Shown here one piece after another: positions 1 through 64,000 of a stretch of 64,000 nucleotides of DNA; within the stretch, counting starts at the first letter, position 1, and every line of letters begins with the position of its first letter. The notes below the pieces were generated by a model. That model had not been told where the DNA came from and did no database searches. It saw only the letters and a list, made by a program, of their open reading frames with translations. The translations under genes were made by a program, and so were the position numbers. The stretch comes from Cyanophora paradoxa CCMP329 (lineage: Eukaryota > Plantae > Glaucophyta), in NCBI GenBank assembly GCA_004431415.1, contig QPMI01000325.1, positions 2,355 to 66,354 on the forward strand, in the 5' to 3' direction.

Positions 1-194
1 GAGGCGGTGGAGCAGCGGCAGCGGGAGGAGGAGGCGGTGATGGGGCGGTACCCGGACGAGGAGGTCGTGTACGTGCCCGCGGAGACCGAGTTCCCCGAGG
101 ACGCGCAGCTGCCCGGCGAGGAGATCGACTTTGGCGCCCTCGCCGCCCTCGCCGCCGCCCGTGCCGCCGCCGCCGACGCCGCCGCCGCCGCCCG

Positions 195-225
<31 letters not shown>

Positions 226-3200
226 GAGGGTGGCGGCAAGAAGGGGCGGAGGGGCGGTAAGAAGGGGGAGGATGCGGGGGAGGAGGGGTTCGAGGGGATG
301 CAGCTGCCGCGGCGGCACCTGGACGAGTTCGCGGTGTACGACGCCGACTTCTCGATGGTGCCCCTCGAGGCCCTCTTCCTCGACGACGACGCCCCCGCCC
401 TCGTCGAGATCTACGCCTCCGGCTTCGCCATGGCCCCCGCGCAGTGGGACCGCAAGGAGTCGGCCCAGCGCGCCGCCCGCGCCGGCCCCTCCCCCGGCCC
501 CGCCGCCGCCGGCTCCAGCAGCGCCCCCGGCTCCAGCTCTGGCGCCGCTGCCGGCTCCAGCTCTGCAGCAGGATCGAGCTCGGCCGCAGGATCCAGCTCT
601 GCGGCAGGATCGAGCGGCGCCGCGGGTTCCAGCTCGGCCGGGGGTTCCAGCTCGGCGGCGGGTTCCAGCTCGGCCGCGGGCTCCAGCTCGGCCGCGGGCT
701 CCAGCTCGGCCGCGGGCTCCAGCTCGGCCGCGGGCTCCAGCTCGGCCGCGGGCTCCAGCTCGGCCGCGGGCTCGAGTTCGGGGGCGGCCGGCTCGAGCGC
801 GGGGGCGTCGGCGGGGAGGCGGGCCGGGGAGGAGGAGGGGGCGGGTGCGGGGCTGGTGGAGGGGAGCGGGCGGCGGGTGTACCTGGGCCCCGTGACGGAG
901 CTCTACTTCGACATCATCTCGGTGGAGGCGGACGCCGTCCCCGCCCTCGTGCTCCGCACGGGCTGCGCCGAGTACGCGCTCGAGAGCCCCGCCCTCGAGT
1001 ACTCCGACTTCTTCGGGCCCGTCCTCCGCAAGCGCAACCTCGCATGGCGCATCATCGCCCGCCTCCGCGAGGAGTCCCGCGCCTCCAAAGTCAGGTCCGC
1101 CCCGCGCCCCCGCGCCGCCCCGGCCGCGCCGCGCGCGAGAGGCGGCGCAGCTTCGACGAGATCGTGCGGGAGATTGCCAAGGAGCCCATCTCCTCCCCGC
1201 ACTTCATGCCCGCCACCCCCGCCCGCCCCGCCCCGGGCCCCGCCCCGCCCCTGAGGCCGCCGCAGCGGGAAGAAGCCGGAGAAGGTGGCGGCGGCGATCG
1301 TGCAGGCGGGGGTCTTCATCCTGCGCATGATCGAGAAGCTGGTGGAGCTCGTGCAGGTGACGTTCGGCTCGAGCGACCTCAACTTCCTCCGCTCCTGCTC
1401 CTTCGTCGCCGCCCTGCGCACCAAGATCCGGGAGCGGGAGGCGGCCGGGCCCTCCGCGCGCCTCGTCGAGCGCTACCGGGCGCTCCGCGAGCTGGCGCGC
1501 ACGCAGCCGGGCCTCCTGCGGCGCGGCGGCCTGCGCATGCCGCGGGGCGCCAAGGTCGCCAAGGGGCCCACCAAGGCCACCGTCACGCCCCTCGTCGGCG
1601 CTATCTGGAACGACACCATCTTCACCTCCCAGACCCTCAACCTGCCCGCCGACGGCGCCGGGCCGGGGGGCGGGCAGGCCGAGGTCGACCCCGACGCAGT
1701 GCGCGCCCCCGAGGACCGCGAGGAGGAGGACGAGGAGGAGGAGGAGGAGAAGCCCGCGCAGGCCCCCAAGACCCGCTCCAACGCCGGCGTGCGCGCCCCG
1801 GGCCCCCGCGGGGTCGGCGAGGCGCTGAGGGGGCGGCAGCGGGGGGAGGCGCCGAGCACGGGGCGGGTCCGCGAGGGCTCCACCATCCGCTGGGAGGGCG
1901 AGCCCCTGGGGACCGTCGACGGCCGCACGTACTACTCGTGCGCCCCCGCCTTCCCCGCGGGCCCCGGGGGCCAGCGGTGCTGATGCCCGGGCAGGGCGGC
2001 GCGGGTCGGGGGCGTGCTGGTGCGCCCGCAGGAGACGTACCTGCGCTTCAAGCCGGCGGAGGGGGAGGTGCCGCTGCGGGAGGGGGCGGAGAAGGTGCCG
2101 GACTACATCGGGCGGGTGGCGGCGCTCTGGGAGGGGCGCTCGGCGGAGGGCGCGCGGGACAAGTTCGCCTTCGTCCAGTGGCTCTACCGCGGCGTCGACA
2201 CCATCCTCGGCGACTTCTCGTCCGCCCGCCCCGCCCCGCCCCGCCCCGCCCTGGCGCGGGGCCCACGGAGGGGGGCAGCGACCCCCGCGTCCTCTTCCTC
2301 TCCACGCACTGGAGCGAGAACTCGCTGAGCTGCATCGCGGGGCCCGCCGAGGTGCGCGTCGGCGAGGAGCCCGAGGGCGTCGAGAGCGTCACCGGCGCCG
2401 CCGGCACCGCCCGCGAGGAGCCCTCCGTCTTCTTCATGTCCAAGTGCGCCCCGCTGAAGCGAGAGGCGCCGGCCGCGCCGACGCGGCGGGCGGCAGGATG
2501 TACCGCCCCTTCACGCCCTGCTTCACGGACCTGCCGACGGAGAAGCCGCCGGCGACGGCCGCCTCCGCGCACGCCTTCTGCGTCCAGTGCGGCGCCCGCC
2601 TCCCTCCGCGCACGGGGCGGCGGCTGAGGCGGGGCAGGACGAGCGCGATGCAGGCGCTGCGGAAGAGCGGGGAGCTGCAGGTGGACTGGGACGACGAGGA
2701 CGCGCTGCCGGCCGATAAGAAGGCCAAGGGCGCCCGCCAGTACTCCCGCATCATGGTCACCCGGTGGGACCACCGCGCCGACGCCCTCGAGACGTGCCCG
2801 CCCCCCGCCCCCCGCCCCCTCGGGGGCCCACGCCGGCGCAGGACGGCCTTTTCGGTGGGGGACTGCTGCTACCTGCACCCGGACGCGCACGCGTTCGAGT
2901 ACCCGCGGGCGCTGGAGGTGCCGGACACGAGCCACCGGGTGCAGTACGGCGGCCGCAAGTCTCAGTTCATCAAGGGCTCCGCCGGCTGCGCCCCGCCCTT
3001 CGTCGTCGCCCAGATCCTCGCCTTCCACCGCGTCCGCCCCGCCCCCCCGCCCCCCCGCCTCCCCGGTGCGGGGCGCGGGTGACGGGGCGCAGGGGGCGGG
3101 GGAGGAGGGCGAGCTGCGCGTGCGCCTCTTCTACCGCCCCGAGAACACCCACGAGGAGCGCGCCCTCGCCTACTCCTCCCCCTTCCGCGTCCGCACCGCC

Positions 3201-5231
3201 CCGCCCGCCCGCCCGCCCGCCGCCCGCCCGGCCGCCCGGCGTTGCTGACGGGCGGCAGCTGCTCTTCTGGAGCGGGGAGGAGGCGACGGTGGGGGTGGAG
3301 CACCTACGGGGCTCCTGCATGGTGGCCCGCAAGGACGCCGAGATCTTCGACCTCGACGCCTTCCTCGCGTGCGCCCCGGGCCCCGCCCCGCCCCGTCCCC
3401 GCCCGCCCGGCCTGAGCCGGCGCAGCGGGGAGGACCGCTTCTACTACGAGCAGGCGTACGACCCCAAGGCGAAGAAGTTCGGGCCCGTCCCCGCCGGCGT
3501 CAAGACCTCCCGGCCCCTCCCCGCCGCCCCCGGTGGCGAGGCGCAGGGGGCCGGCAAGGGCAAGGGCAAGGGGAAGGAGAAGGAGGCGCGCGCGGAGGCG
3601 AAGGAGGCCGCTGCCCCCGCGCGGCTGGCGGCGATGGACATCTTCGCGGGGTGCGGGGGCCTCTCGTGGGGCCTCGAGCAGGCGGGGGTCATCGAGACCA
3701 AGTGGGCGGTGGACATGAGCGAGCAGGCCCTCGCCGCCTTCCGCACCAACCACCCCGCCGCCGCCACCTTCACCGAGGACTGCAACGGCGCGCCCCGCCC
3801 CGCCGCAGCCCCGCCCCGCCCCCCTCACCGCCCCGCAGAGCTCCTCATGAAGGCGATGAACGGCCAGGCCGACCCGCGCTTCCCCAAGAAGGGCGAGGCG
3901 CGCCCCGCCCCGCCCCTCCGCCTTCCCTCGACGCTGACGGCCGGCGGCAGGTGGGGATGCTCATCGGGGGGCCCCCGTGCCAGGGGTATAGCGGGATGAA
4001 CCGGTTCGCGGAGCGGGAGCGGGCGGCGCTGCTGAACTCGCTGGTGGTCTCGTACCTCTCGTTCTGCGACTTCTACCGGCCGCGCTTCTTCCTGCTGGAG
4101 AACGTGAAGACCTTCGTGGACAAGTACAAGGGGGCCGTCCTGAAGCTCTGCCTCCGCACCCTCACGGCGATGGGCTACCAGTGCCGCTTCGGCATCCTCC
4201 AGGCCGGCAGCTACGGCGTGCCCCAGTCGCGCCGCCGCCTCTTCATCCTCGCCGCCCTCCCGGGCGAGCGCCTGCCCGCCTTCCCCGAGCCCCTCCACGT
4301 CTTCCCCCGCGCCGACTCCCAGGCCCGCGCGCCGCCCCCGCCCCTCCCCCGCCGCCGGGGCGAGCGGGGCGGCGCAGATCGCGATGAACCTGCGGATGTA
4401 CGACGGGAGCGCGTTGCGGTTCGTGGCGGTGCGGCGGACGGAGTCGGCGCCGCTGCGGGCGGTGACGGTGCGGGACGCGATCGAGGACCTGCCGCCCGTG
4501 CGCCTCGGCGCGGCCGAGGTCGAGCTGCCCTACGCCGCCGCCCTCGTCAACGACTACCAGCGGCGCATGCGCGCGGGGGCGGCCCCCGCGCTGCTCTACG
4601 AGCACGTGGTGAAGGCGATCCGGGACGAGATCGTCGTGGTGCGCATCCAGCGCATCCCGAAGCGCCGCGGGGCCGACTGGCGCGACCTCCCCGACATCAA
4701 GGCCCGCCCCGCCCCCGCGCCCCGCCCCGCGCGCCCCGCGCCCCGGCCTGACGCCCCGCAGGTGATCCTCTCCGACGGCAAGACCGACGACCTCATCCCC
4801 TTCTGCCTCCCCGTGCGCCCCGCGCCCCCGCGCGCCGCGCCGCGCGCCGCTGAGGGGCGGGGGCGGGGCGCAGAACACGGCGGCGCGGCACAACGCGTGG
4901 GCGGGGCTGTACGGGCGGCTGGACCCCGAGGGCCAGTTCTCGACCATCACGACGGAGCCGAACCCGCTCGCCAAGGCCGGCCTCGCCCTCCACCCCACCC
5001 AGGACCGCATCATCTCCGTCCGCGAGTGCGCCCGCGCCCAGGGCTTCCCCGACTGCTTCCGCTTCGCCGGCGCCGTCGGCGACAAGTACCGCCAGGCCCG
5101 CCCCCGGCCCGCCCCCGCCCGCCCCGCGCCCTCACGCCCCGCAGATCGGCAATGCCGTGCCGCCGCCCCTGGGGCAGGCCATCGGCCTCGAAATCAAGAA
5201 GGCCCTCCTCCCCAGCTCCAAGAAGCTCTAG
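1..5231 (+). CDS. DNMT1: DNA (cytosine-5) methyltransferase 1 (DNMT1/MET1); likely 5'-partial, 17 inferred introns
   Basis: Spliced translation gives an RFTS-like segment ([18 protein letters not shown]), [12 protein letters not shown], two BAH-like regions and a GKGKGKGK linker. C5-MTase motifs follow: [67 protein letters not shown]. Stop TAG at 5229-5231. Confidence 0.96.
511..800 (+). repeat. Coding 18-bp tandem repeat (ggctccagctcggccgcg)n encoding (GSSSAA)n
   Basis: About 15 near-identical units are directly visible in the first DNMT1 exon. Confidence 0.9.
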
Positions 5232-5645
5232 CTAGCCTGCGGGGCGCTCTCAGCCGTACCCGCCGCCCAGGCGCGCGGGAGCTAGCGCTTGTCAATTCAG
5301 AATCGAATTTTGCAGAATTTCCTGCGTTCGCAGGGGAAAGAGAGAAACGGGAGTACACTATTCCTACCCACTTGCTTCCTAGCCTCGAAGAGCGGCTTCT
5401 GGCAATCAGAATAGCGTCATCGGTACACGCGCACGAGACAACCTCTCTGTGTGCGTAGCGCCGGGAGAGAGAGCCAGATATAGACACCCGTCCTAGAAAG
5501 CTCATCGAGCCTTCTTAACGATGTGAAAGGAGGCTCGACTGCTCCGCCGGGAGCTCGACTGATCCGCGGCCGCGCGCAGCAAACGTTTGCGCGGTTCGGG
5601 GATACTCGCTGCGAGCGGCGGCTTTAGCCAGCTAGCACATCGACG

Positions 5646-6296
5646 ATGCCGCACTACGAGAACCAGACGTACTCGGATTACAAGGTCAGTCCCCGGCCCC
5701 CCTCTTGTGTTTCGCCGGCGCCGGCCTCGAGCTCAGCCATGCCAGGTCGGAGTCGGCAAGGAGCGCCACATGCACGAGATTCTTCACGGGAGGGACACGT
5801 CATGGCTCAAGTGAGTCGTCGACCTGCTTCGCACGCCAGCGCGCTGGTACACGGAGCTGACGCCCCGCGCAGGACTGCTGTACCGCCTGGTGCGGCAGCG
5901 CGCGGCGGCCGCACGCCCAAGGCCGCCGGCGGGGGCTCACGCGCCGGCGCAGGCTGGAAGATCTCGCCGGCGACCAAGGCGCACGCGGTGGACACGACGC
6001 GCCCGAACTTCGCGCTGAAGCCGCCCCCGGAGCCGCAGCCGCGCTCCCCCGCGCCCGGCGACGGCGAGCCGGTCGACGACACGGTGCGCCGCCTGGGACC
6101 GCCCCTGCCGCCGCCCCCGCCGCCCCCGCGGCCGCGCTGCAGCTGGGCGGGGCCGACGTGCGCGCAGCCGCTGTTCCGGACGGTGGCGGACCGGCGGACG
6201 TTCAAGCCGACGCCGGAGGAGCAGATGTACCTCTCCCTCGCCATCGGCTCCAAGCGCCGCCTCGACGGCGGCTTCTACGGCTTCAAGGCCCAGTAG
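5646..6296 (+). CDS. Small hypothetical protein (~125 aa, 4 introns)
   Basis: Removing four GT-AG introns gives MPHYENQTYSDYKVGVGKERHMHEILHGRDTSWLK...GSKRRLDGGFYGFKAQ. No family recognised. Confidence 0.6.
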   Translation: MPHYENQTYSDYKVSPRPPSCVSPAPASSSAMPGRSRQGAPHARDSSREGHVMAQVSRRPASHASALVHGADAPRRTAVPPGAAARGGRTPKAAGGGSRAGAGWKISPATKAHAVDTTRPNFALKPPPEPQPRSPAPGDGEPVDDTVRRLGPPLPPPPPPPRPRCSWAGPTCAQPLFRTVADRRTFKPTPEEQMYLSLAIGSKRRLDGGFYGFKAQ

Positions 6297-6620
6297 CACC
6301 CCGCCCCGCCCCGCCCCGTCCCGTCCCGTCCGCCCGACCCGCGCGCGGAGCCTTGGAGCCCGTCGCCTCCTCGTCGCATTGGGGCACGCGTGCGGCTGCG
6401 GAGCGCGGCGCCAGAGAGCAGGAAATTACACACACGCACACACACGCTAGCTAGAATAATATGAACCCAATACATAAGATCAGGAGCCTGCGCCGCGAGT
6501 CAAAGAAGCTTCTAGATCTAGAGGCGCGATGGATATCCGAGCGAAAGCATAAGAAAAGCGCTGGTCGCGGCAGCGTGAAATGGAAAGGGGCGCCGTGGCC
6601 CGGCGGCATGCGCAGCGCGG

Positions 6621-9600
6621 TCACTCGGCGGCGAGGGCCGGGGCGGCGCTGGGGGAGAGCGAGGACTCGCGGGCCGGGGCGGGCGGGGCACGGAAGGATG
6701 TGCGGAGGGCGGAGAGGGCCCTTTTAAAGCGGGCGGAGCGCTCGCCCGGGGGCGTCGAGGCGGGGTCGAGGCCGGAGGGGCGGCGGGTGGGGAGCGGGAG
6801 GAGGGCGGCGGGGCGGGCCCCGGGGGTGCCGGGGCTCGGGGTGCCCCCCGAGGCGGGGCTCCCCGGCCCTCCGAGACCTCCAGCGGGGCGAGGCCGGGCG
6901 GGGAGCCGCGCGCCCCCCACGGGCGCCCCGGCGGCGTCCCCGCGGGGGAGCCGCTCTCGGCGCGCGCGAGGGGCGACTCGCGCCGAGGGCGGGGCTCGCG
7001 GGGCGCTCGAGCGGGGGCAGGGCGGCCAGGGAGCCCGAGCGGCCGGCGAGGAAGGCGAGGCCGCCGCCCCCGGCCCCCGGGAGAGGGCGGCGAGGTCGGG
7101 GCCGGCGACGCGCGTGCCCCGCGCCCCCTCCAGCAGCGCCCCCGGCGGCCCCGCCGCCGCCGCCTCGCCGCCGCCGCCGCCTCGACGTCCCTGCCGGCGC
7201 TCAGCGCCGCGGTGGGGCCGGGGAGGAGGGCGGAGCGCACGACGCGGCGCCGTGGGCGAGGCTGGGGGCGGACGCGGGGGCCCGCCCTGAGGTCCGCTCG
7301 GCGAGCCGCCGCGCGGCTTTGAAGCTCATCCGGTGCAGGCTGAAGCTCTGCGCCCGCCTCTCCAGGCCCCCCCGCCCCCCGTCCTCCGACACGTACCCCT
7401 GCGCACCCGTGGGCGGGGGGCGGGGCCGGAGCGGGGCCGGGGGACGCACGCTGGGGGTGGAGGGGACGGCGAGGGTGGAGGAGGCGCGGAGGAGCGGGGG
7501 CGGGGCCGGGGCGGGGCCCGGGGCGGGCGGCTCGGGCTCGGCGAGCAGCGGGGGCCGCCCGACCTCGATCTTGAGGCTGCCGCCCGAGGGGGGCCCCTTG
7601 AGGCTGCCCCCGGAGGAGGGGCCCTTCAGGCTGCCCCCGGAGCGAGGCCCCGTTGCCGACAGCAGCGCCCCCAGCCCCCCAGCGCCTCCCCCGCGCCCGC
7701 TCCGGCCCGGCCCTGGCCCCCGCGGCGGGGGCGGAGCGGGCGGCGAGGGAGGCGGCGATGGAGGCGAGGGGGTCGCGGGCGGGGCCGGCGGCCCGGGCGT
7801 CGGCGCGGCGGCGGCGGAGACGGCGGAGAGGCGGCGGGAGGCCTCCGCGAGGGCCGCCTCCACGCCCCCTGCCCCGCGCTGCGGCGCCCCCGCGCCGGCG
7901 GCGGCGGGGCGCTCCTCGGCGGGGGCGGCGTGCGGGCTCGAGCGCGCCTCGGCGAGGCGACGGGCGGCCTTGCGGGGCCCCCGCGAGGCACCCCTGCGGG
8001 AGGTCGCTGTAGTACCCGACCTCCTCCTCCACCGCCGCCAGCAGGCCCCGGGCCCCCCGCGGCGGCCGCCGGGCCGACGGGGCGGAAGAAGAAGCTCTTC
8101 TGGTGGGCGAGGGCGGCGGCCATGCCGCGGAAGGCCGCCCCGCCGGCCTCGCCGCGCCGGCGGCCGGCCTCCTCGCCCTCGTCGTCGTCGTCGTCGGTGC
8201 CGGGGGCGCCTCGGCCTCGGCCTCGCGGCGCAGGCGGGCCTTCACGGCGCCCTCCCCCGCCTTCCCCCGCCACGACCGCGACCGCGGCATCCGAGACGCC
8301 CCCGCGGGGGGCCCGCCGCCGCCGCCGGCGCCACCCCGCGGGTGGGGCCGGGGCGGCGTCGCGCCCCGTGCCGAGGAGCTGCGACTGTGCGAGCTCGCTC
8401 GCCTCGAGCACCGCCCGCAGCAGCCGCCCCAGCGCCGCCCCGAGCTCTGCCTCGCCCCGTCAGCGCGGCGGGGCGCGGCGGGCGGGGCGGGGCGGGACCG
8501 GCGCGGGCGGCGTCGCAGTCGAGTGTGAAGAGGACGGCGGGGCCGGCGGCGAGCGCCCGGCGCACGATGCGGTCCGCCGCGCTCTGCGCGTCGAGCCAGC
8601 GGGGCCAGAGGGCCTCGCCCGGGCCGGCGCGCGTGAGGCGCTCGCCGGGAGGCGCGGGGTGGCGGGGATGGAGGGCCCGGCGGGGTCGTCGGGGAGGGTG
8701 TCGGGGCCGGGGCGTAGTGGAGGCGAGGGCGCCGTCGAGGAGGAAGTGGAGGGGCCGAGCGCCGCGCCGGCCGCGAGGAGCGGCTCCAGGGCGGCGTCCT
8801 CGGGGGCGGCGGCGCGGGGCCGCGCCTCGAGGGCCCCCGCGTAGAGCTGCTCCCCGTCCCGCAGCAGCCGCCGCGCCCCCGCCCCGCCAGCGCCCGCAGC
8901 TCCCGCCCCGTTGCGTCCAGCAGCCCTGGCACCGTCTGCCCCCGTGGCCCGTGAGCCGCCGGGTGCCGGCGTGGGGAGCGGGGCGGGGGGCGGGCGGACG
9001 GCGAGGAAGTCGGTGACGCGGGAGAGGTCGCCGGCGCGCTTGGCCTCGCGGGCGCGGCGCCAGGCGGCGTGCGGGTGGACCAGCAGGCGGGTCCCCTCCG
9101 CGGCGCTCACCGCCGAGAAAGCGCGGGGCCCCGGCTCGAGGGCCGCCGCCACGCCGAACGCCGAGCCGCCTTGCAGCGTCTCCTTCAGCCCGGGCGCCCC
9201 CGCCGCCCCCGGCCACGAGACCTCCACCGCCCCTGCGCGTCCCCCGCCGCCTGAGCCGCGGCCGCCAAAGCGCGCGCGGCGACGGCGGCCGAGGGCCGGT
9301 GCACCGGAGAGGACTTGGAAGCAGGCGTCGCCGTGGTCGCCGCACACAAAGACGGCGCTGCGGGCCCCGCAGCTCTGCAGCGTCAGCTCCCGGCACACGC
9401 CGTCCATCAGCGCCGTGTCCTCCTCCAGCGCATCCCCTGCGCGCCCCGCCCGCGGTGAGCCAGCGCCGGTGGCGGCGGCGAGGGGCAGCGGCTCGCCCAG
9501 AGGAGTGATCGAGACCCATGGCCGCAGGGCGGCGATGTCCTCTGCCGTGCGCTGCGCTCCGCTGCGCCCCGCCGGCGTCAGCGGCGATCGCAAAGGCAGC

Positions 9601-41723: not shown

Positions 41724-41732
41724 GCTGCGCCC

Positions 41733-42212
41733 ATGGCCTCCCCCTCCGCCCTCCTCCGCCCCTCCCTGCGCTCCGCCTTCCTCCGCCCCGTCCCGCGCCT
41801 CGACCTCCTCCGGCCCGCCGTCCGCCCCGGCCGCCCGCCATTCTTCGCCAGCCCCGCCCCCGCCGCCCTCGTCCCCTCTGCCCCGCGTCCCCCGGGGGCG
41901 CTGGGGACGGGCCCGGCGACGAGCGCGTGGCGGGCGCTGTCGGGGGGGACGGGTCGGGGGGCGGGGAAGCTGCGGTGGGGGGACTACGCGGCGGTGGCGG
42001 AGGCGCTGGACGAGGCGCACCCCGACGCAGACCTCCTCCGCATCCGCTTCCCCGAGCTGCGCGCCTGGGTCCTCGCCCTGCCAAACTTTGGGGACAACCC
42101 GGCCTTGTGCAACGAGGGGCACCTGGAGCAGATCCACGTCGCCTGGATGGAGGAGCGCGGCGTCGACCTCGACTACGAGCCCCTCGAGCCCCCCGCCCCC
42201 AAGAAGCCCTGA
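41733..42212 (+). CDS. iscX: Fe-S cluster assembly protein IscX/YfhJ with organellar presequence
   Basis: LRWGDYAAVAEALDEAHPDADLLRIRFPELRAWVLALPNFGDNPALCNEGHLEQIHVAWMEE matches the IscX pattern (LKW.D...I.EAL...PD.D...VRF.D...W...L.DF.DDP..SNE..LE.I...W..E). The N-extension is Arg/Ser/Pro-rich and acid-poor. Confidence 0.9.
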   Translation: MASPSALLRPSLRSAFLRPVPRLDLLRPAVRPGRPPFFASPAPAALVPSAPRPPGALGTGPATSAWRALSGGTGRGAGKLRWGDYAAVAEALDEAHPDADLLRIRFPELRAWVLALPNFGDNPALCNEGHLEQIHVAWMEERGVDLDYEPLEPPAPKKP

Positions 42213-42527: not shown

Positions 42528-45500
42528 ATGTACCTCGAGAACGTCTACATAGCGCGGTTTAAGAGCTTCCTGGGCGAGCACGAGTGCTCCTTCTCGCCAG
42601 GGCTCAACGTACGCGGCGCCCGCGCCCCCCCTTCTTCCTCCGACTCTGAACGCGGGTGCAGGTCATCGCTGGTGCGCACATCTGCGCTATCGACCCTCTG
42701 CACGACGCGTGTTGCGCTGCTCCTGCTTGTACGCCGCGTCGGATCGTCATCAGCCGATCGCAGCAGCGAGCAGCATCACCCGGCCTGGCCCGCGCGTATA
42801 CGTAGCGCGCTGCCAATTCTGGCCACGGGCGAGCAGCCATTTGCAGCAGCATCATCCGCGCGCGTAGCGCTAGCGCGCTGCCGTTCTGGGCGCGCGAGGC
42901 TGACTGGGCGATGCTCGTGCAGGTCCGAATGGATCCGGAAAAAGCAACGTTTTGGACGCCATTCGCGTCTGCCTGACGGAGGACGTGTCGGGGCTTCGGG
43001 TCTCATCTCTGAGAGACCTCATCGCAAAGGCGCCGGCGACCGCGAAGGGCGAGGATTCGAGCGCGATGGTCACGGTGACGTTCGACAACGCTGGGCGCAA
43101 GTTCGCCGCGCAGGGCCTGACATCCGACAAGTATGCGATCACCTGCACGCTCACTCCGGAGTCCCGCACGTTCAGGCTCAACGGGCGGCAAAAGAGCCAG
43201 AAAGGTCCGCCCGGCTAGCGCGGCCTCGCGCCAGAGCGTGGAGCTTACTGCCGCGGGCGCTGCAGAGCTGCGCGAGTGGCTGAAGGCGATCGGGGTCGAC
43301 GTCGAGAACCCGGCCTTCCTCCTGCAGCAGGGCTCCGCCTCCAGCATCCCCACCCGCGAGTGCGCGACGCGCCGCCGGCCGCGGCCCCCTGGCAGCTGGC
43401 AGCGCAGGGCCCACGTCGCGGCGCAGGCCCAAGGAGCTGGCGAAGTGGATCGCGCTCGTCGCGGGGACGGCGCTGTTCCAGGAGAACGTCGCGCGCATGC
43501 GGAGCGAGCTCGCGCGCTGGAGCGAGCTCGAGCGCTCCAGCCTCCGCAACATCGGCGCGGCCGCCCCGCCCTCAACGCCGCCCGCCGCCCGAGGCCGCGG
43601 CGTCCGCAGCGGCGCTGGAGGCGTCGCTGGCGAAGGAGGCGGCCGAGGCGGGCGCCCAGGCCCGCCTGCACGGTCCGCCCCGGTCCCCTCTGCCTCGCCG
43701 CCGGCCCACCCCGCGCCTCCGCAGAGCTCGAGGAGCTCATCGAGGCCGGCGAGCGCCGCCTCCTCCTCGCCCGCCGCCTGCGCGCCCGCGCCGCCGCCGC
43801 CGCCGCCGCCGCGAGACGGCGCTCCCTCTCCGCCCTGCGCCTCGAGAAGGAGGTGCCGCGCCGCGCCCCACGCCCCTCGAGGCCCGTTGGACTCTCCGCA
43901 GCGCGAGGCGGCCGCGAGCGGCGCGGAGGCGAAGGCCCTGGAGGGGCGGCTGGGGTCGGAGGCGGCGGCGGAGGAGGCTCGCTCCCGGGCCATCGCGCCC
44001 CTCGTCGAGCGGGCCGCTGCGCTCCGCGCGGTGCCCCCCGCCGCCCCGAGGAGGGCGCATTCCCTCAGGCTCAGCGGCTTGGGCAGGCGGCGCAGGAGGC
44101 GGAGGCGGAGCTCGAGATGGAGCGCGCCGACGCCGCGCGCGCCGCGGCGGCCTCCGAGCGCCTCTCCAGGGTCCGGCCTCGGCTCCGACGCCACCGCATG
44201 CGCCCCGACGCGCCACGCAGGAGCTGGAGAAGGCGCGCGGGGAGCTCGCCCGGCAGCAGGCCGCCGCCGCCTCAGCCGCCGACCGCGCTGCCGAGCTGCG
44301 CGCCAGCGCCGAGCGGTGCGAGGGGCGCGGCGGATGCTGTCCAGCAAACGCGAGGAGATTGACGGGGCCAGAGCAGGCTGCGGGGGGAGGTGGCGGGGGC
44401 GGAGGAGGCGCTGCGCGAGGTCGAGGCCGCAGCCGACGTCGGTGCGCGCCGCCCGCGCCGCCCCGCGCCGCGGCGCACGATCGCCGCCCGAGGGGGCGGG
44501 CAGCGGCGGCGGTGCGGAAGCGGCGGGAGGCGCTGCAGGCGGCCCTCCAGCGCGAGGCCGCCGCCGAGCGCGCCGCCTCCGCCGCCGCCGTCAGCGTGCG
44601 CCGCCGCGCGCCCGTGTTCGACCGCACGCGGGGCCGCAACGCAGCGCGCAGGCCGAGCGGGCGGCGCGGCATGCGGAGAAGGCCGCGCAGGAGCTCCACG
44701 CAGAGGCCGAGCGCCTGGGGCGGCGCGCCGCGGAGGCCGCCGCCGCCGCCACCGCCGCGGAGAAGCGCGCAGAGGCGCGCGGATACGAGGCCTCCGCGGC
44801 CGCTGCGGTGCCTACGGCTCCGCCGCTGCGGCGCACTCGTGGTGCGACGCCGGGCGCAGCGGGCGGAGGCGGAGGCGGCGGCGGAGCGGGTGCGGGCGGG
44901 CGGGAGGAGCACGAGGCGGCGCTGCGCGAGGCGGCGAAGCACGCGCGGGAGCTCCGGTGAGGCCCCGGCCGTCCCGCACCGCGCCGCCCCGCGCCAAGGC
45001 GTGCAGCGTGGCGCGGCTGCTGCCGGCGGGGGACCCCACCGACGCCGCTGTGCGCGCGCCGTCTGCGATAGCCCCGCGCGCCGGCCGCCCGGGCCTCCGG
45101 CACCTCGAGCCGGCCGCGCAGGCCCCGCCCCTCCTCTCTCTGCTCCGCCTGCGGAAGGAGGCCGAACCGCACCTGCTCGCCCTCAACGTTGGCGCGCCCG
45201 CCCGCCGCCCCGCGCGGGGCGCGCCGGGCGCGAGGGGCGGAGGGGCAGCCGGGGCGGGGAGCTGGCGGTGCGCGTGGCGGCCGACTCGCGCCCCGTGGAG
45301 GCGATGCTGCGCGACGCCCGCCGCTACGGCCGCGCCCTCCGCATCTGGCCCCTCGGCCCGCCCCGCCCCGCACACTTGCCCGAGCGGAGGCCGGCGCGCG
45401 GGCGCTCACGGGGCGCAGACCGGCTGGAGGCGCGAGACCGGCGCGGGGAGCAGGGGCGGGCGCGGGGCCCCGGGGACGCCCTGCCCCTCGAGCTGCTCGA

Positions 45501-46437
45501 GTTCCGCCCCGAGCACGAGCGCGCCCTCCTCCGCGCCTTCGGCGGGTGCCCGCCGCCCCTGGAGCCCGCTGCCCGCGTCGCGCCCCGGGCGCGAGCCGGC
45601 GTGCGATGGCGAGCGCAGGTGGGTGCTCGCGGGGGACGACGCCGCCGCCGCCGCGCTCGGCCTCCGAGGCATCCCCGCCGTGTCCGCCGCCCGCTCCCGC
45701 GGCCTGCTGCAGGGGCCGCGTGAATGACTCGCTGGCTTCGCTTCGCAGGGCGCCGGACGGGACGCAGCACCGGGCGGGGGAGCTGACGGGGGGCTCCCGG
45801 GGCGAGCGGGCCAACCCCCTCCGCACCAAGTTCAGCCTCGACCGCGCCACCGTCCGTCCCGCGTGTGCCCGCCCCGCGTCCTGGACCGAGCGCTCTTCCA
45901 CACACGCAGGAGCGGGCCGAGGCGCTGGCGGCTGAGGTTGCGACGCTAGAGGCAAGAGCGGAGGAAGCGAGCGGCCGCCTCGCGGCGGCACGCGCTCGGG
46001 AGGCGGAGTGCACCTCCGTCCGCCGCGCCGCGGAGGAGGCGGCGACTACGGCAGCGGAGGCGGAGCGGAGGGCGGAAGCGGAGCGGGAGCGGGCGCAGGG
46101 GCTCCGGGAGGAGGCGGCGCGCAGCGCCCAGGAGGCTCGCGCCGCCGGCGAGCGGCTCCGGGCGGCCGAGGAGCAGCTGCGGGGGATGGAGGGGCCGGAG
46201 GGGCGGGGCGGGCCCAAGAACAAGTGCGCGGGGTGGGGCGAGCCTCCGCCAGATCCTCTGCGCTGAGGGGGGCGGCGCAGGGACGCGGTGCTGGGGGCGA
46301 TGCGGGCGGAGCGCGACCGCCTCGCCCGCGCCCTCCGCTCCCTTGCCGGCACCGGCCCGCCCCGCCCCGCCCCGCGCCCGGCGCCTCCTCCCGACGCGGC
46401 GGGCAGAGATCGCGGCGGCGGAGCGGGAGGCGGAGGG

Positions 46438-46468
<31 letters not shown>

Positions 46469-48066
46469 AGGCGGAGCGGCTCGAGCAGGAGCGCGAGGAG
46501 GCCCCGACGAGGCGGCCGCGGCCGGCGCGGCGCGCCCCGCCCCGCCCCGCCGCGCGCGCGATCGCGGTGGCGCGATGTTCCTGCAGGTCGAGGCGAAGGC
46601 CCGGGCGCTGGCCGCGGCGCGCGAGGCCCTCGCCCGGGCCGAGACCGACGAGGCGGCGGCGCGCGGCCGCGGCGAGGAGGCGGAGCGGGCGCGCGCCGCC
46701 CTCCGCGCCGGTGCCGCCCCGGACCGCCCCGCGCGCCCCGCCGCCGACGCGGAGGAAGCGGCGCGCGGGGCGGTGGAGCGGGGGCGGGAGGCTGCGCGGG
46801 CGGCGGAGGCGGCGCGGGCGGGGGAGGCGCGGGCGGCGGAGGAGGAGGCGGCGGCGCTGGAGGAGGCCGGCGAGCTCGACGCGGCGGCGGCGGCGGCGGC
46901 GGCTGGGGCCCCCGAGGCGCCCCACGGCGGGGAGGAGGCGGGGCTCGAGGGCCCCGGGGCGAGGCGGCGCGGGAGGCGCTCGCGGCGGAGCTGCGCGCCC
47001 TCCGCGCCGAGCGCGCCGCCCTCCGCCGCCGTGGCATCGGCCCCGCCGTGCCCGCCCCGCCCGCCCCGCCCCGCAGCCTCGCGGGGCGGCAGCTCAGGCG
47101 CGTCGGTAGGAGGCGGCGGGGTCGGAGCGGCGGCAGGCGCAGCTGGAGGTCTTCCGGAAGCGGGCGCGCAAGGGCGGGGCCGGCGGGGCGGGCGGGGCGG
47201 GGGCCGCTGACGGGGGCGCACGCAGCTGGAGGAGGTGCGGGGGCGGTGGGGCGGCTGAACGAGGGGATCGCCGCCTCCCTCCAGCGCGTCGCCGCCGCCA
47301 ACCAGGACGCCTTCACCGTCCGCCCCCGTCCCCGCCGCCCTCGCCCTCTCTCCCCGGCCCGCCCCCGCCAACGGTCCCCCCCGCAGCGCGTCGCCGCCGC
47401 CTTCGCGCAGCACTTCCACAGTGCGTTGGAGCCGCCTCGCGGCAGCGGGCAGCGCCCGCTCAGCCCCCCTGCAGCGCTCGTCCCCGCCTGGCGCGGCGAG
47501 CTGCGCAAGACGAGCCCCGACGGCCCCGTGGCCCGCGCCTGCCTCCGCCCCGCGCCGGCGCCGCCCCTCACGCGCCAGCGGCCCCGTGCAGGAGGAGGGC
47601 GTCTCCTTCTGGATCCGGGGCGGGGCGGGATCGGGGTCCGGGGCGGGGGAGGGTGGGGCGTGGAAGGAGAGCCTGGAGGGGCTCTCCGGGGGCCAGCGGA
47701 CGCTGCTGAACCTGGCCTTCCTCGTCGCCCTCGCGGGGGCGCGCGCGGGGCCCCTCTACCTCCTCGACGAGGTCGACGCCGCCCTCGACGAGGAGAACCA
47801 GGCCCGCGCTCCGGGGCGTCGGGGGGGCGCTCGCCGGCATCTGATCACGAGCGACCGGCGCGCAGGCCGCCGTGGCCCGCCTCGTCGCCTCGGCGTTCCC
47901 CGCGAGCCAGGTGCTGTGCGTGTCGCACCACGGGAGCATGCAGGCGCAGGCGGAGCGCGTGCTCGAGGTCGCCCGCGACGAGACCGCCGGCTCCCGCGTC
48001 GCCCGCACCCTCGACAAGCCCCGCCCCGCCCGCGCCCCCAAGCGCCGCCACACCGCCGCCTCCTGA
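42528..48066 (+). CDS. Divergent SMC protein (SMC2-like)
   Basis: [27 protein letters not shown] (Walker A), FLLQQG (Q-loop), a hinge-like [41 protein letters not shown] (signature), [12 protein letters not shown] (Walker B/D-loop), SQVLCVSHH. Confidence 0.88.
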
Positions 48067-48146
48067 CCCCCTCCGCTTGCAATTCCATCCAAGGTCGACA
48101 CAGCATGCGCAGCCGAGGCTGGGTGCCCCGGGGATCCGGGTGCGAG

Positions 48147-48990
48147 TCACGCGAGCTCGGCGGTGTAGCGGACCCAGGTTGCGGTGGCGCCGAGGAGGTG
48201 GCCCGCCTGGGGCCAGGGCGAGACGGCCCCCGGGACGAAGCCGGCGCGCTCGTACAGCCGCCGGGCGCCCCGGTTGCACCCAACGCACGCCAGGATGACT
48301 TGCCGGTGCCCCTGGCGGTCGCGAGGCTCGGATGGTCAGCTGGCAGCGTTGCCGGGGGAAGGGCACGCCACGATGGGCTGCCACCGTGGCACCTGGTTGC
48401 GCGCATGGGCGACGGCCGCGTCCAGGAGGGCGCGCCCGACGCCGGAGCGGCGCCAGGTCGGGGCGACGACCATACGGATGAGCTCCGCCGCGCCGGGGTG
48501 CGCGGGGTCGAGCGAGGCGCGTACGCCGACGAGCCCGACCGGCGCGCCGTCGGCGCCGCGGGCGACAAGGAAGCGCACAGCGCCCCGCGCGAGCATCTGG
48601 TCGTTGTCCTCTCGCACGCTCCTGTAGATCGCGTCCAGCCCGCGCCGGCTCCGCAGGAACGCGAACGCCGGGAGGGCGAGAGCGGCGGCGGCAGCGATGA
48701 ATCGCGACGAGCCCGAATTGGATGAGGCACAAGCTGCGGCTGCAGCTGCGGCGATGCAGGCACCCCAGCCGACCAGGACGCGCGTGCTGGCAAGGAGTTC
48801 CCGAGTCTGAGGGCACGCAAGCTCCAGCCACCCCTGCGCGGCGAGGGCACGCAGCATCAGCGCACCATAAGCATGAGCATGCAGTGCGGCGCACCTCTCG
48901 CAGCAGCGGCTCCAGCACGAGGCGGTCGCAGTCTCGCAGGTCATCGATTAGGGCGGGCGCTGCGACGTCGAATGCGCAGGGCAGCGTCAT
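48147..48990 (-). CDS. GNAT-family acetyltransferase with hydrophobic segment (NAT8-like architecture)
   Basis: AELIRMVVAPTWRRSGVGRALL (acetyl-CoA motif A) and NRGARRLYERAGF; two introns. Confidence 0.85.
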
Positions 48991-50692: not shown

Positions 50693-50727
50693 GCCTCGCG
50701 CCACTTGCTGGCCAGCGGCTTTGACCT

Positions 50728-53700
50728 ATGCAGGCGGTAGCCTCGCCACCGAGCAGGCTACCTCGTCGAACGTCGGTGCAGGCGACGAGTTCGTCGCCTT
50801 CAGCGCGGCCAGCAACGAGCGGTGTTGCAGGCGCCAGCAAGCGTGATTCATCAAGCGGACTAGGCCACCCGGCAACAGTTCACGGACTAGGCCACCCGGC
50901 AACAGTGCGGCAGGCAGAGAGCTGCGCTCCCCAGCCTTCGTGCAGCGTCGAACAGCCTTTGCCTCCAACTTCGCCCGCAGGGCCTAGCCATGGCCCGATG
51001 CCGCCGCCGTCCCCTATGTCCTTCAGTAGCCAGCCGCCCCTGCCGCTAAAGAGCGCGGAACCGGCCTTCCGGCTGGAAGACCCTCGGTCGAGCGGCCGGC
51101 TCGGACGAAGGCCCCGAGATCTGGACGCACCACTGTTGCGGACGCGTGTCAGCGGCAGCCCCGCAGCAGCCGCCAGCCCTGCTGCGGTCGCAACCACGAG
51201 CATGCTGCCTAGCACTCCCGCGGACACCGAGTCGATCTTGAGTCAATCCCTGAGCGCCCTTGCGAAACGCAGCAATGCGAACGCACTACTTAGCCCTACC
51301 GCCACGCCCTCTGTCGCAACTCCAGGCTCTCACTCAGCGCGCCCGCCACCGACCCCTACCTCGGCCCGGCCCGCTCTCGCGGCCGGCCGGCCAACCACCA
51401 CCCCAATTCGGACCCCATCGACGCCAGCAGGCCCGCCCGCTGATGCCTGGAAAGCGGGGCCGAGCGAACCGGTTAGGTTCGTCAATGCTTTCTCTGCCTG
51501 GCCCCCTCCACACCTCAGGGGCGCGCAGCACGCGCAGCAGTGTCAACGGGCATCCAAGGAAGGTCGGCTCTGAGGGAGAGAACGTCCGCGTAATCGTCCG
51601 GTTGCGACCGCTCAACGCGAGGGAAGCCGAGACGGGTGGGCGCCTTCTGCCGGGTGGGTGCGGCGCGGGCGCTGAGCGGGCGGCAGGCGGGCGGACGTGC
51701 ATCTCAGCGGACAGCGCAAACAACCGGGTGGTGCTGGAGACGAAGCCGGAGCCGGCCGTCTTCACGTACGACTGCGTCGCTGGGCCCTCCGTCGACCAGG
51801 TGCCCGTGGCCCCCGCCTTCCTTTTCCGCCTCTCAACGGCCGCTCGCCCACGACCGCCGTCGCAGGACGAGTTCTTTCACCTCGCCGGCAAGCCCGCCGT
51901 CGAGGCCTGCATGAACGGCTACAACGCCACGTGCGCCCCTCCCCACCGCGCGCCGCTGCCGCCGGCGCCGATGTGGGGGGCGCAGCATCTTCGCGTACGG
52001 ACAGACGGGCTCCGGCAAGGTGCGCAGGGCGGGGCGGGGCGGGCGCAGCGCGTTCTGACGCGGCAGCAGACGTACACGATGCTGGGACCGGTGGACGAGG
52101 AGGTGCGGGTCGGGGAGCGGCAGGACCTGCGGGGCATCATCCCGCGGACCCTTGAGCACCTCTTCGAGACGATCGCCGCCGCGCCCGACGACGGCAGCGA
52201 GGTCTCCTTCCGCGTCTCCTTCCTCGAGGTCCGCCCGCCGCCCGCCGCCTCGCCGCCCCGCCCCGGGCGGCCGCGAGCGGGGCGCAGATCTACAACGAGG
52301 CGCTGACCGACCTGCTGGACCCCGCGGGCGGGGCGGGGCGGCTGCACCTGCGCGAGGACGCCCGCCTCGGGGTGACGTGCGAGAATCTGCGGGTCGAGAG
52401 CGTCTGCACCGTGCGCGAGGCAATGGCGCTGCTGCACAAAGGCGCCGCGAACCGCCGAGTCTGCGCCACGGCCATGAACCACGAAAGCTCCCGCTCCCAC
52501 ACCGTCTTCACCGTCGCCATCGAGCAGCGGGTTCGCCCCGCCCCGCCCCGCGACGCACGCGCCCTCTGCCCCATCGACCCCTTTGCGCAGGCTGCGGAGC
52601 GCGGCGTGGAGGTGCTGCGGCGCGTGCACCTGAACCTGATCGACCTGGCGGGCTCGGAGCGGCACGCGGCGACGCTGGGGGCGGCGCAGCAGCTGCGGGA
52701 GACGTCGAACATCAACCGGAGCCTGTCGACGCTGGGGCACGTCATCCGGGCGCTCGTCACCATCGCGCACGGGAAGCGGCCCGTCCACGTCCACTACCGC
52801 GACTCCAAGCTCACCTTCCTCCTCAAGGCGCCCCGCCCCGCCCCGCCCCCGCCATCGCCCCGCCGTCGCCCGCGATGCAAGCGGCCGGCGCAGGACTCGC
52901 TCGGGGGCAACAGCAAGACGAGCGTCGTCGCGAACGTCTCGCCGTCCCTTGCCTGCTTCAAGGAGACCCTCCTCACCCTCCACTTCGCCCGTGCGCCCCG
53001 CCCCGGCGCCGGCCGCCCGCGCGGGGGCCGAGGGGCGGTGCAGGGCGGATGAAGCTGGTGCGGAACCGGGCGATGGTGAACGAGGAGGTCTCCGGGGGCG
53101 CGGCGGCGGCGGCGCTGCAGGCGGAGGTGGAGCGGCTGGCGCGGCACGTGAAGCTGCTCGAGCATGAGCTCTTCTTCGAGCGCGTCCGCCACCGCGCCGA
53201 GGAGAGCGCCGCCGCCGCCGCCGGGGGCAACTCGGGGCGGACGCTCTCGACGCGGGAGGACGCGCTGGCGGACACCAACTTCTGGCTGGACGAGCCCGAG
53301 CTGGCGCGCCGCGGCGAGGAGGCCGCCGAGTACGGGCGGCTGCTGGGGGAGCACCGGGCGCTGCAGGCGGAGGTGGACGCGCTGCGGGAGGTGCAGGCGA
53401 ACCGGGAGGAGGCGGCGGCGCACGAGGCGACGCTGCTCAACGAGGCCCAGGAGATGATCAGCGAGCTCGACGGCGCCCTCGAGGAGGCGAACGGCAAGCT
53501 CGCCGACCAGGCCCGCCTCGTCTCCCTCCTTCTCCGCTCCCTCCACGAGTGCTCCTGCGCGCCCCCGGAGGCCAAGGCCGCCCTCGCCGCCCTCGCCGAC
53601 CGCCCCGAGGCCCGCACCGCCCCGCCCCGCCCCCGCTACTGCCCGCCCCGCCGCGCTGATGCTGGAGGGCGGCAGATCGCGCACCTGCTCTCGCACTCGC

Positions 53701-61855: not shown

Positions 61856-62017
61856 TCGTGTGTGTGCTTGACTCTGATTCTCTGCAACGCCGCCGTGCGC
61901 GGAGCCCGAACGGCGAATGTGAAAACCGAGCGCCCCGGGTACGCACTCCGCGATGGGTTCGCCACCCCGCTCTCACGTCGCCAGCCTGGGCTGACCGCGA
62001 GCGGTGCAGGGATTCCG

Positions 62018-64000
62018 ATGGACGATTCAGAGAACGCGCAGGTGCGACAAACCCGGCGCGTGTGCTTGGGAGTCTGATGCCGATGACCGCTGCCACGCCG
62101 CGCACAGGATGAGCCGCCTGCGGTCGATAGCTGCGTTACGCCTGGCCACAAATGCAACCACATTCGCTCGAGCGTGAAGCAGAGCCGCGTCAGCAAGGTA
62201 GCTGTACGAGCTTTCGCCCCGCCCCTGCCGCGCTCACCGCACGTGCAGGGCCTGAAGACATCCGTCGGCGGCAAGGCGTCGAACCCGTTCGGCGTGGCTT
62301 GCGAGGTGCGCGCTCTGATCGCCACGGCGCGATGCCCGGCCGAACGCCGCGAACAGGACTGCTCCAAGAAGGGCACTGAGAGCAAGCTAACCAAGGATCC
62401 AGTATGCTTTGCGCATCTATGGCCCCGCCTAGATGCGTTCGGCGCTCATCCCGCGCCCCCCTGCAGAATGCCCCACCAGAAGCCGCCCAGCAGTTGTGGG
62501 TTCGCCGTGCCGGCGCGCCGCGTCGACGAGTGCTGACCGCGCGCCCGTCGAAGATATGCCTGAATTGCGGGAGCGTGGTGTGCGAGGCGGGTCACATGCA
62601 GAACCACGCGCACAAGCAGGCCCTCCACTGCATCCTCCTTAACCTCGAGAGCCTCCGCGTCATGTGCCCGCCCCGCCCGCCCCGCCCCGCCCGCCCCGCG
62701 CCCATTGTCCCTCCCAGGTGCTTCGCCTGCAAGGAGGAGATTGAGTCCTCCAGCGGCCGCGGCGGCGGCGCCATCGACGGTGCGGCTGCCCGGCCGGCCG
62801 AACTCGAACGCGCGGCAGGATACCTGAACATGGCGCGCGGCCTCCGCGCAGAGTGCCGCAAGCTCGTCCGACAGGCCCTTCCTGCGGACAAGCGCCTCAC
62901 GAAGGGAGCGCGAGTGCCCCCCGTGCCCGGTGCGTCCCTGCACCGGCGCCGGCGGCGTGCGGCGGGCCGACGTGCGCGGGTGCAGGCAAGGTGGAGACGG
63001 CGAGCCCGAAGGCGGCGGCGGCGAAGGCGGCGATGCAGCGGAGCGCGAAGCAGGCGCCGGGGAAGCTGAAGCAGGAGGCGGCGGCGGGCCCGGTGGTCTC
63101 GGGGGAGGTGGAGGGCGGGGCGCGGCGGGGCGGCGGGGTGAAGGGCCTCGTCAACCTCGGCAACACCTGCTTCTTCAACGCCGTCGTGCAGGTGCCCCCG
63201 CGCCCCGCCCCGCCCCGCCCCGCTCTGCCCCCTGCCGGCGACGAGCCGCGGGGCAGTCGCTCGTGCAGACGGTGCCGCTGCGGCGGCTGCTCATCGGGGA
63301 GCTGGTGGAGGGGGCGGCGGCGCCGGCGGAGAGCGCGCCGAGCGGGGCCCCCGACCTGCGCGCCGTCCCGGGGCCCCTCACCGCCGCCTTCCGCAAGGTC
63401 CGCCCCCGCCCCCGCCCCCGCCCCCGCCGCTGTGGGCCCGGGGCCAACGTGGGCGCAGCTGGCGGGGGCGATGTGGGGCGCCGCCGGCTCGACCGTCAAC
63501 CCCCGCGAGCTCTTCGACCAAGTCTGCAAGAAGTGCGCCCCGCCCGCCCCGCCCGCCGGCGCCCCGCCCACCCGGGCGGCGGCAGGGCGCCGCGCTTCAA
63601 GGGGTACCAGCAGCAGGACAGCCACGAGCTGCTGCGGTACCTGGCGGAGGGGATCCGCAGCGAGGAGCAGGCGCACCGCACGGCGCTGCGGGGCCCCGCG
63701 GGGGCGGGGAAGGAGGCGAAGGGGAAGGAGCGGGAGCCGCCGCTGCTCTTCGACTCGGTCTTCGGGGGCGTCCTCCGCAGCACCGTCGTCTGCGACGCTT
63801 GCGGCAGCGTGCGCCCCCCCCCCCCCCCCCCCCCCCCCCCCGCCCCCGCCCCCCGAGCCCGCCGGGGCCGACGGGGGGCGGGGCAGGTCTCGAGCGTGCT
63901 GGAGCCCTTCCTAGATCTCTCCTCCCATCCCTCCCCGGAGGCCCTCGCCGCCCTCGCCCCGCCCGCCCGGAGGCGCCTCTCCGGAGGCCCCGCCGGCCCA
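62018..64000 (+). CDS. Ubiquitin-specific protease with ZnF-UBP (USP16/45-like), 3'-partial
   Basis: KCNHIR, WICLNCGSVVC..HMQNH..CFAC, Cys box GVKGLVNLGNTCFFNAVVQ, FKGYQQQDSHELLRYL, FGGVLRSTVVCDAC. Confidence 0.9.

Follow-up and report, generated by a model that had tools for sequence, protein, structure and literature searches.

Genes of the window and delimitation of their exons

The DNA analysed here, called the window throughout, is a 64-kb stretch of the genome of the glaucophyte Cyanophora paradoxa CCMP329 (contig QPMI01000325.1, assembly GCA_004431415.1), and the present work concerns a wave of G- and C-ending codons which runs through its genes in phase with their splice sites. The window is gene-dense on both strands, with many introns of about 60 nt and a G+C content of 72.7%, G and C being about equally frequent overall; for the published Cyanophora genome, 67.6% GC, 9.2 introns per gene and short introns have been reported (PMC6704402). 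Within almost every exon, silent sites are occupied first by G and then by C, and the effect is such that a strong second layer appears to lie over the protein code. This layer is seemingly undescribed; no description of the pattern was found in the literature searched, including the Cyanophora genome and methylome papers. The genes had been named in a sequence-only reading, made from the letters and their open reading frames (ORFs), and Pfam searches run exon by exon upheld these calls (DNMT1, kinesin, LMBRD2 and IscX) where they were checked. The principal matches were the following:

3951-4322, plus strand: exon of the DNMT1-like gene, matching DNA_methylase (Pfam)
26509-26863, minus strand: exon of a USP7-like gene, matching USP7_ICP0_bdg (Pfam)
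38153-38587: match to LMBR1 (Pfam)
41733-42209, plus strand: IscX-like ORF, matching Fe-S_assembly (Pfam) with residues 80-142
52288-52827: match to the kinesin motor (Pfam)

Protein kinase, Arm-repeat and gelsolin-like domains were also matched among the exons, and an Rfam search of the window returned zero RNA families.

Exon borders were established independently of codon usage by placing RNA contigs from three studies (runs X1, X3 and X8) on positions 1-6000. Besides several uninterrupted exon pieces, their joints reveal 15 introns, each 49-61 nt long, between 1095 and 5144 in the DNMT1-like gene; nine of these introns start with GT and six with GC:

1095-1150, 1208-1265, 1789-1839, 1938-1994, 2220-2278, 2444-2496, 2587-2637 and 3032-3092, plus strand: RNA-confirmed introns 1 to 8
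3369-3425, 3788-3838, 3898-3950, 4323-4377, 4702-4761, 4813-4873 and 5096-5144, plus strand: RNA-confirmed introns 9 to 15

For the rest of the window gene models were required. The first, a 13-state codon-based hidden Markov model (HMM) without splice-site matrices, served as a starting point only. It was blind to G/C skew and missed the introns at 1789-1839, 2587-2637, 3369-3425 and 3788-3838, because these resemble coding sequence; three of its long exons are actually split by these four RNA-confirmed introns, all of which lie at flips, that is, at points where C-rich sequence gives way to G-rich sequence. A second model was therefore built, in which the donor and acceptor matrices were fixed and jumps over introns were made explicit. 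Self-trained splice matrices were tried for this purpose and rejected, since they over-predicted (204 introns, some of them within RNA-contiguous exons); instead, the matrices were fixed on 40 good introns, the penalty was tuned to the RNA data, and exons were scored without any skew information. This model recovers 15 of the 15 RNA-confirmed introns, which belonged to its training set, and contains at least one false intron (475-521, inside an RNA-contiguous piece); its gene ends are shaky. Its output comprises 123 introns, with a median length of 61 nt, and 89 internal exons, with a median of 111 nt. Very GC-rich low-complexity stretches at 6.6-9.5 kb, 24.3-25.9 kb and 43-48 kb were omitted from most exon and intron statistics because reading frames there are uncertain, and were kept in the splice-site skew profiles, the gene-end profiles, the annotation-free flips and the genic/intergenic comparison.

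Phase, shape and scale of the wave

In the 14 exons whose borders are given by RNA, the ratio of G to C at four-fold degenerate sites is 71:35 over the first 45 nt and 14:93 over the last 45 nt (Fisher p = 2e-16). Window-wide, the four-fold skew runs from +0.39 to +0.45 past acceptors and from -0.59 to -0.63 ahead of donors, and the G-to-C direction is seen in 56 of 60 internal exons (sign test p = 9e-13), 47 of them individually significant and none significantly reversed. Genes on the plus and the minus strand show the same exon polarity, as had been claimed from the letters alone. The splice-phased pattern of synonymous choice put forward in the sequence-only reading is thus borne out by the RNA-delimited and the internal exons alike, and even its individual counts proved exact: exon 4378-4701 opens with 25 consecutive G-ending four-fold codons, while in exon 4874-5095 the first 11 end in G and the last 25 in C.

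The effect resides almost entirely in silent positions, as expected for a nucleic-acid signal written over a constrained protein. All eight four-fold codon families switch, alanine for instance showing a GCG:GCC ratio of 99:15 at exon starts and 18:98 at exon ends, so that the predicted positional gradient persists within the window after control for amino acid. Amino-acid usage itself is nearly constant along exons, and only glycine clearly follows, being enriched at starts; first codon positions follow the G-to-C course weakly and second positions do not. No A/T polarity was detected within exons, and A/T-ending codons display only a weak gradient with distance from introns, from 2.4% to 5.3%. 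A splice-phased second layer on synonymous codon choice, independent of amino acid and present on both strands, is therefore supported.

The same phase emerges when the annotation is set aside. In a two-state segmentation of the skew, 71 of 159 C-to-G flips fall inside introns, which make up 12.6% of the bases, and this concentration agrees with the claim that introns carry the reverse order, C and then G; the opposite, G-to-C switches lie in exons in 120 of 160 cases and in introns in four. Only flip locations and runs tests were used from this segmentation, and block counts were not, because permuted data give as many blocks as real data. Measured in sense orientation, the flip comes after 0.63 of the intron (0.61 on the plus strand and 0.65 on the minus strand; p = 0.0025 against 0.5), and its displacement on both strands makes it a sense-specific feature. 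Also in sense orientation, the plateau of C is the purer of the two, and many introns are without any G-rich 3' arm.

As to the shape, the description of the wave as a sawtooth has to be corrected. The G fraction holds a plateau of about 0.8 and falls to about 0.2 within a few sites, so that the wave is square, and the C-to-G flips internal to exons are equally abrupt. In the 372-nt exon 3951-4322, about 183 nt of G are followed by about 189 nt of C (change point 183.5, G fraction 0.82 before and 0.17 after); in exon 4874-5095, on the plus strand, the change point is at 93.5 nt, with G fractions of 0.84 before and 0.00 after; and exon 26509-26863, on the minus strand, forms one clean cycle of 355 nt, with a change point at 174 nt and G fractions of 0.95 and 0.11. 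Whatever the length class of the exon, the switch stands close to the midpoint (median relative position 0.49-0.56), and its position scales with exon length (slope 0.65, r = 0.86). Counted in G-to-C cycles, the exons are distributed as follows:

one cycle: 64 exons of 61-523 nt
two cycles: 14 exons of 240-644 nt
three cycles: 3 exons of 540-615 nt, at 180-205 nt per cycle

There is accordingly no fixed period, since cycle length tracks exon length, and the period of 200-350 bp proposed earlier does not hold. In fact, the whole-window autocorrelation of the skew shows a trough at about 110 nt and a weak peak at about 320 nt, with no usable period, and intron-to-intron spacing has a single broad mode at 140-180 nt (interquartile range 150-277 nt); quantised spacing was looked for in the window, and nothing beyond this one mode was found. 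The wave is moreover restricted to genes. In 50-nt windows, the variance of the skew exceeds the binomial expectation 3.07-fold in genic and 1.28-fold in intergenic DNA, intergenic DNA shows no oscillation, and the negative lobe of the autocorrelation occurs in genic DNA only.

These measurements bear directly on a nucleosome-phased signal, one of three mechanisms suggested beforehand, in which each G-to-C unit would carry one nucleosome with a dyad-symmetric sequence preference and introns would have been gained in linkers. It was reportedly observed by Huff et al., in 2016, that introners insert into linkers. The scale is suggestive, as the median exon and intron add up to about 172 bp (111 plus 61 nt), the mode of intron spacing covers 140-180 bp and the three-cycle exons have cycles of nucleosomal length, 180-205 nt; in addition, this lineage has gained many introns, and its genes of bacterial origin carry 13-27 of them (PMC6704402). 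Nevertheless, single cycles range widely, from 61 to 372 nt, an RNA-verified exon of 372 nt included, about one quarter of the units are shorter than a nucleosome core, intergenic DNA is silent, and the intron flip is placed in a sense-specific manner. Gene-body methylation is absent from the Cyanophora methylome (PMC12344493), so that the linker-methylation mechanism of other GC-rich algae is unlikely here. With an elastic cycle length and a broad intron spacing, a nucleosomal origin of the wave is regarded as very improbable.

A separate question is posed by the exons with more than one cycle. The relevant features are:

3426-3787, plus strand: two-cycle exon, RNA-verified, with an internal flip at 3567/3573; RNA contiguous over 3426-3786
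3951-4322, plus strand: single-cycle exon, RNA-verified; contiguous in RNA contigs over 3949-4319
4378-4701, plus strand: two-cycle exon, RNA-verified, with an internal C-to-G flip at 4572/4575
41481-42209, plus strand: two ORFs 12 nt apart, the second being the IscX-like ORF (41733-42209)
52537-52593, plus strand: putative in-frame 57-nt intron GTTCGC...TTTGCGCAG in the kinesin motor
53044-53609, plus strand: model-predicted exon with three cycles in 566 nt, with flips at 53222/53225 and 53327/53336

The claim that the wave continues inside long exons without introns stands for exons 3426-3787 and 4378-4701, each with two cycles; several other long exons turned out to hold hidden introns at their flips. 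The extra cycles of long exons could all be the footprints of introns, either short in-frame ones that went unrecognised or ones recently lost, and the odds on this explanation, which concerns these exons only, are judged even. In its favour, the codon-based model failed to see four of the 15 RNA-confirmed introns, each of them located at a flip, and the interiors of RNA-verified exons show weak blockiness. The kinesin gene offers a further case: segment 52537-52593 lies between the SSRSH and DLAGSE motifs, the C-to-G flip at 52581/52587 coincides with it, the Pfam Kinesin match takes 180 residues for 157 profile positions, and an alignment with KIF15 leaves about 20 surplus residues at this point. 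The segment is probably a hidden in-frame intron; left unspliced, it would insert some 19 residues, rich in Pro, Ala and Arg, between switch I and switch II. On the other side stand the flips at 3567/3573 and 4572/4575, located inside RNA-contiguous exons, together with that of the IscX-like ORF, where no splice-like motif was found, and those of 53044-53609, where no intron-like motif was seen. Taken over all modelled exons, interiors more than 90 nt from splice sites are strongly blocky (runs z = -10), the strongest contributors being exons known from the model only; model-predicted single-exon ORFs and the IscX-like ORF show blocks as well.

Splice-site context and its rivals

The introns of the window are unusual in their splice signals. 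GC donors account for about 40% of all modelled introns, the consensus being G[TC][CG]CGCCCC at the donor, CTGAC-like at the branch site and GCAG at the acceptor, and a U-rich tract is absent. A pyrimidine tract composed of C precedes the branch site instead, and between the branch and the AG the sequence is often rich in G. By itself, the core G[TC][CG]CG is a poor guide to donors, as 276 exonic decoys were counted against 84 true donors. True donors are distinguished from decoys by the skew of the 42 nt of exon upstream with an area under the curve (AUC) of 0.79 and by intronic skew with an AUC of 0.83. The skew context around donors thus constitutes usable information for site choice, which is not a proof of its use.

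On this basis the favoured interpretation, to which we give a probability of roughly 0.4, is that the alternating domains form a pre-mRNA context code for splice-site choice, kept by selection. The sense strand of each gene is a succession of C and G domains straddling the splice sites. Each C domain begins near the middle of an exon, passes over the 5' splice site and ends about 25 nt ahead of the 3' splice site; there a G domain takes over and continues past the 3' splice site as far as the middle of the following exon. The exonic parts are written almost wholly at silent third positions, in a G:C ratio of about 80:20 and then about 20:80. Under the proposed code, donors would be usable only where they lie within a C domain, and acceptors only where a G domain begins. 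The putative readers would be RNA proteins that bind C or G, possibly assisted by generic C:G pairing across the intron, and the domains would be maintained by selection on the pre-mRNA at silent sites. What has been observed is the pattern, with its phase and its sense-specific asymmetries, and the fact that it can tell true splice sites from decoys; its being read, the identity of the readers and its maintenance by selection instead of a fixation bias are the inferred elements of this proposal.

Several findings are in agreement with such a code. Exons and introns are equally GC-rich, the share of GC donors is high, a U-rich tract is lacking, and the splice-site cores, which carry little information, are common in exons; the wave is locked in phase to RNA-verified splice sites and confined to gene bodies; and the flips revealed introns that a skew-blind model had missed. 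Zoning by putative C- and G-binding proteins, the second of the mechanisms suggested beforehand, best fits the sense-specific features and the information-poor splice cores.

The remaining early suggestion, that C-rich and G-rich flanks pair to bring splice sites together, was assessed by predicted folding, with G and C permuted among four-fold sites as controls. In such an RNA structure code, C zones would pair with adjacent G zones, and hairpins of the intron, perhaps also of the exon, would join the 5' and 3' splice sites. Pairing as such is strong, since any C zone pairs with any G zone at -25 to -54 kcal/mol, and the partners of the intron 5' arm do shift, its predicted pairing with the upstream exon falling from 0.27 to 0.21 and that with the downstream exon rising from 0.17 to 0.27 (p < 0.001). 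Exon base pairs cross the midpoint more often (0.52 against 0.41, p = 0.002), and hairpins with equal arms would put the switch at the midpoint. However, cognate partners pair no better than non-cognate ones, whether intron arms (z = 0.5), whole domains (z = 0.0), exon ends (z = 0.1) or exon mid-parts (z = 0.8) are compared, and only flanking-exon pairs reach z = -2.0. Nor does the folding energy of exons differ from that of the synonymous-permuted controls (-74.8 versus -75.5 kcal/mol), predicted donor and acceptor accessibility and arm-to-arm pairing within introns are likewise unchanged by permutation, and the G-rich 3' arm needed for an intron hairpin is wanting in many introns. Of the pairing suggestion, the generic strength and the shift of the 5' arm thus stand and cognate specificity does not; it is weakly supported, and hairpins are quite unlikely as the cause of the wave.

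The context code, for its part, has to contend with a number of observations. Acceptors are separated from decoys by exonic skew with an AUC of only 0.66, a weak discrimination. The G zones extend up to about 180 nt from the acceptor, scaling with exon length, a reach far exceeding the usual range of exonic splicing enhancers, and the sharp square shape is unlike an enhancer effect that decays with distance. C-to-G flips occur with no intron in the RNA-contiguous exons 3426-3787 and 4378-4701 and in the IscX-like ORF. Finally, the C domain of terminal exons continues for 50-100 nt beyond the stop codon with no donor nearby (small samples), and the G domain seems to begin about 50 nt ahead of the start codon, in the 5' untranslated region (UTR), as far as small samples and shaky gene ends allow. 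All of these weigh against the context code. In the IscX-like region, one G-to-C unit crosses the junction of the two ORFs, covering the stop codon of the upstream ORF as well as the start codon of the IscX-like ORF, and is followed by an abrupt C-to-G flip at 41882/41885, which had been announced near 41895, and by a second unit. Since it reaches past stop and start codons and can span two ORFs, the unit belongs to the transcript or exon, and not to the reading frame. At the junction itself (41718-41735, plus strand) the sequence reads TAG gctgcgccc ATG, from the stop of the upstream ORF to the start of the IscX-like ORF, and the pair could represent one two-ORF transcript or tightly overlapping UTRs.

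The terminal C ends, the flips in verified exons, the reach of the G zones and the square shape fit a process anchored at introns and gene ends better, and a bias at the DNA level was therefore kept as an alternative, albeit an unlikely one. A strand-symmetric bias of fixation or mutation, for example in recombination or repair, would start at C-run introns and at the open chromatin of gene ends, by unequal handling of G:G and C:C mismatches or of damaged G on one strand half; spreading both ways, it would fix G on the strand running 5'-to-3' away from its start, and the tracts would meet mid-exon. This would account for a G-to-C unit that is its own reverse complement and alike on both strands, for a square wave like that of replication-type skew, for a switch near the midpoint at any exon length and for a skew that runs unbroken across exon-intron borders. 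It would also suit the facts that first, last and single exons obey the rule, that one unit covers two ORFs, and that polarity rises with G+C at third codon positions (GC3; rho = 0.29, p = 0.003). Against it, intergenic DNA has no wave, and neither the flip displaced towards the 3' end of introns, in the sense of the gene on both strands, nor the excess of C on the sense strand is predicted. Moreover, we know of no process with a 5-10-fold bias in G-C transversions that reverses its sign within a few bases. Narrowed to a strand-polar fixation bias for G-C transversions, written into the DNA from C-run introns and gene ends and meeting mid-exon, the explanation is rather doubtful.

As causes of the wave, the candidates rank in the order of a context code for splice-site choice, a DNA-level bias, hairpins and nucleosomes, the first being tentative, the second unlikely, the third distinctly more so and the last very improbable.

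Related systems, consequences and minor observations

Codon and amino-acid skews at exon ends are known from splicing enhancers, and according to Wu et al. 2013 (PMC3787667) they show largely the same preferences at both ends, are purine-rich and modest, and are taken to reflect selection for splicing signals over the code. The Cyanophora pattern shares with the skews described there a synonymous choice that depends on the distance from the exon-intron junction; it differs from them in that the two exon ends are opposite, about +0.4 at starts and -0.6 at ends. It is also near-deterministic (80:20 or stronger), occupies the exon from end to end, with a single sharp switch whose position depends on exon length, and extends into introns and UTRs.

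Asymmetries between strands offer a second comparison. As recounted in PMC10030826, exons and introns have opposite strand asymmetries, a contrast suggested to help tell them apart (Zhang, Li, Krainer and Zhang 2008), and asymmetries coupled to splicing occur at intron ends (Touchon et al. 2004). According to that account, these too are G/C asymmetries phased to splice sites and thought to separate exons from introns, but the whole exon has one sign and the intron the other, with a small effect, and an A/T asymmetry accompanies that of G/C. In Cyanophora both signs occur in each exon and in most introns, the domain borders lie mid-exon and near the branch site and not at the splice sites, and exons lack A/T polarity. 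Geometry and strength therefore set the pattern apart from both enhancer skews and exon/intron strand asymmetry, its nearest known counterparts.

GC-rich picoalgae, with sequence and methylation phased to nucleosome linkers (Huff and Zilberman 2014, as presented in PMC12344493), resemble Cyanophora, as far as that presentation goes, in GC-richness, many short introns, a unit length near the nucleosome repeat and a dyad-type symmetry; unlike the picoalgae, Cyanophora has no fixed period, no wave between genes and no gene-body methylation (PMC12344493).

In bacterial chromosomes, replication-type GC skew jumps at the origin and the terminus on a megabase scale. This skew and the Cyanophora wave are both square waves with abrupt sign changes, symmetric under reverse complementation and with a switch midway between the upward jumps. 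The Cyanophora wave nevertheless operates at about 100 nt, is tied to exons and introns and is confined to genes, and no replication process acting at such a scale is known to us.

If the zones are read by the splicing machinery, as the favoured context code would have it, they represent a different solution to exon-intron recognition, in which G/C polarity replaces U-rich tracts and strong splice cores and dictates most of the silent sites of the proteome; how much information beyond the splice sites defines an exon would then become testable. If the wave is written at the DNA level, a new evolutionary force on G-C transversions would be at hand. A fixation bias, in particular, would mean biased conversion or repair acting on changes long held to be neutral to such processes; a chromosomal skew at the scale of about 100 nt would then have introns as its organisers or as its preferred landing sites. 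In practical terms, the flips pinpoint short, in-frame, stop-free introns that mislead gene finders, and the authors of the Cyanophora genome have stated that gene models need curation (PMC6704402). Recoding and the design of transgenes for this alga should, furthermore, respect the G/C polarity.

Some minor observations complete the description of the window. The stretches 6521-9106 and 43200-48300 are about 85% GC at all codon positions and consist of low-complexity coding sequence rich in Pro, Ala, Gly and Ser, in which ORFs of 760-860 aa are open on both strands; stop-free antisense frames of this kind in GC-rich stretches may bear on the puzzling 'bidirectional overlapping ORFs' of the genome authors (PMC6704402). 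UTRs and spacers are less GC-rich than introns, which equal exons in this regard, and at 5229-5400 and other gene ends the G+C fraction, about 0.75-0.8 in the coding sequence, declines to 0.5-0.6 over the first 100 nt or so beyond it. In the long first exon of the DNMT1-like gene, at 522-820 on the plus strand, the string of four-fold sites repeats as CCCGC.CCCGC, a sequence feature that points to a tandemly repeated peptide unit. Some RNA contigs of runs X1 and X3 link distant positions (523-4007, 1027-4009 and 1237-3379) through anchors of 21-22 letters in C/G-rich repeats, and these are most likely assembly chimeras rather than products of splicing.

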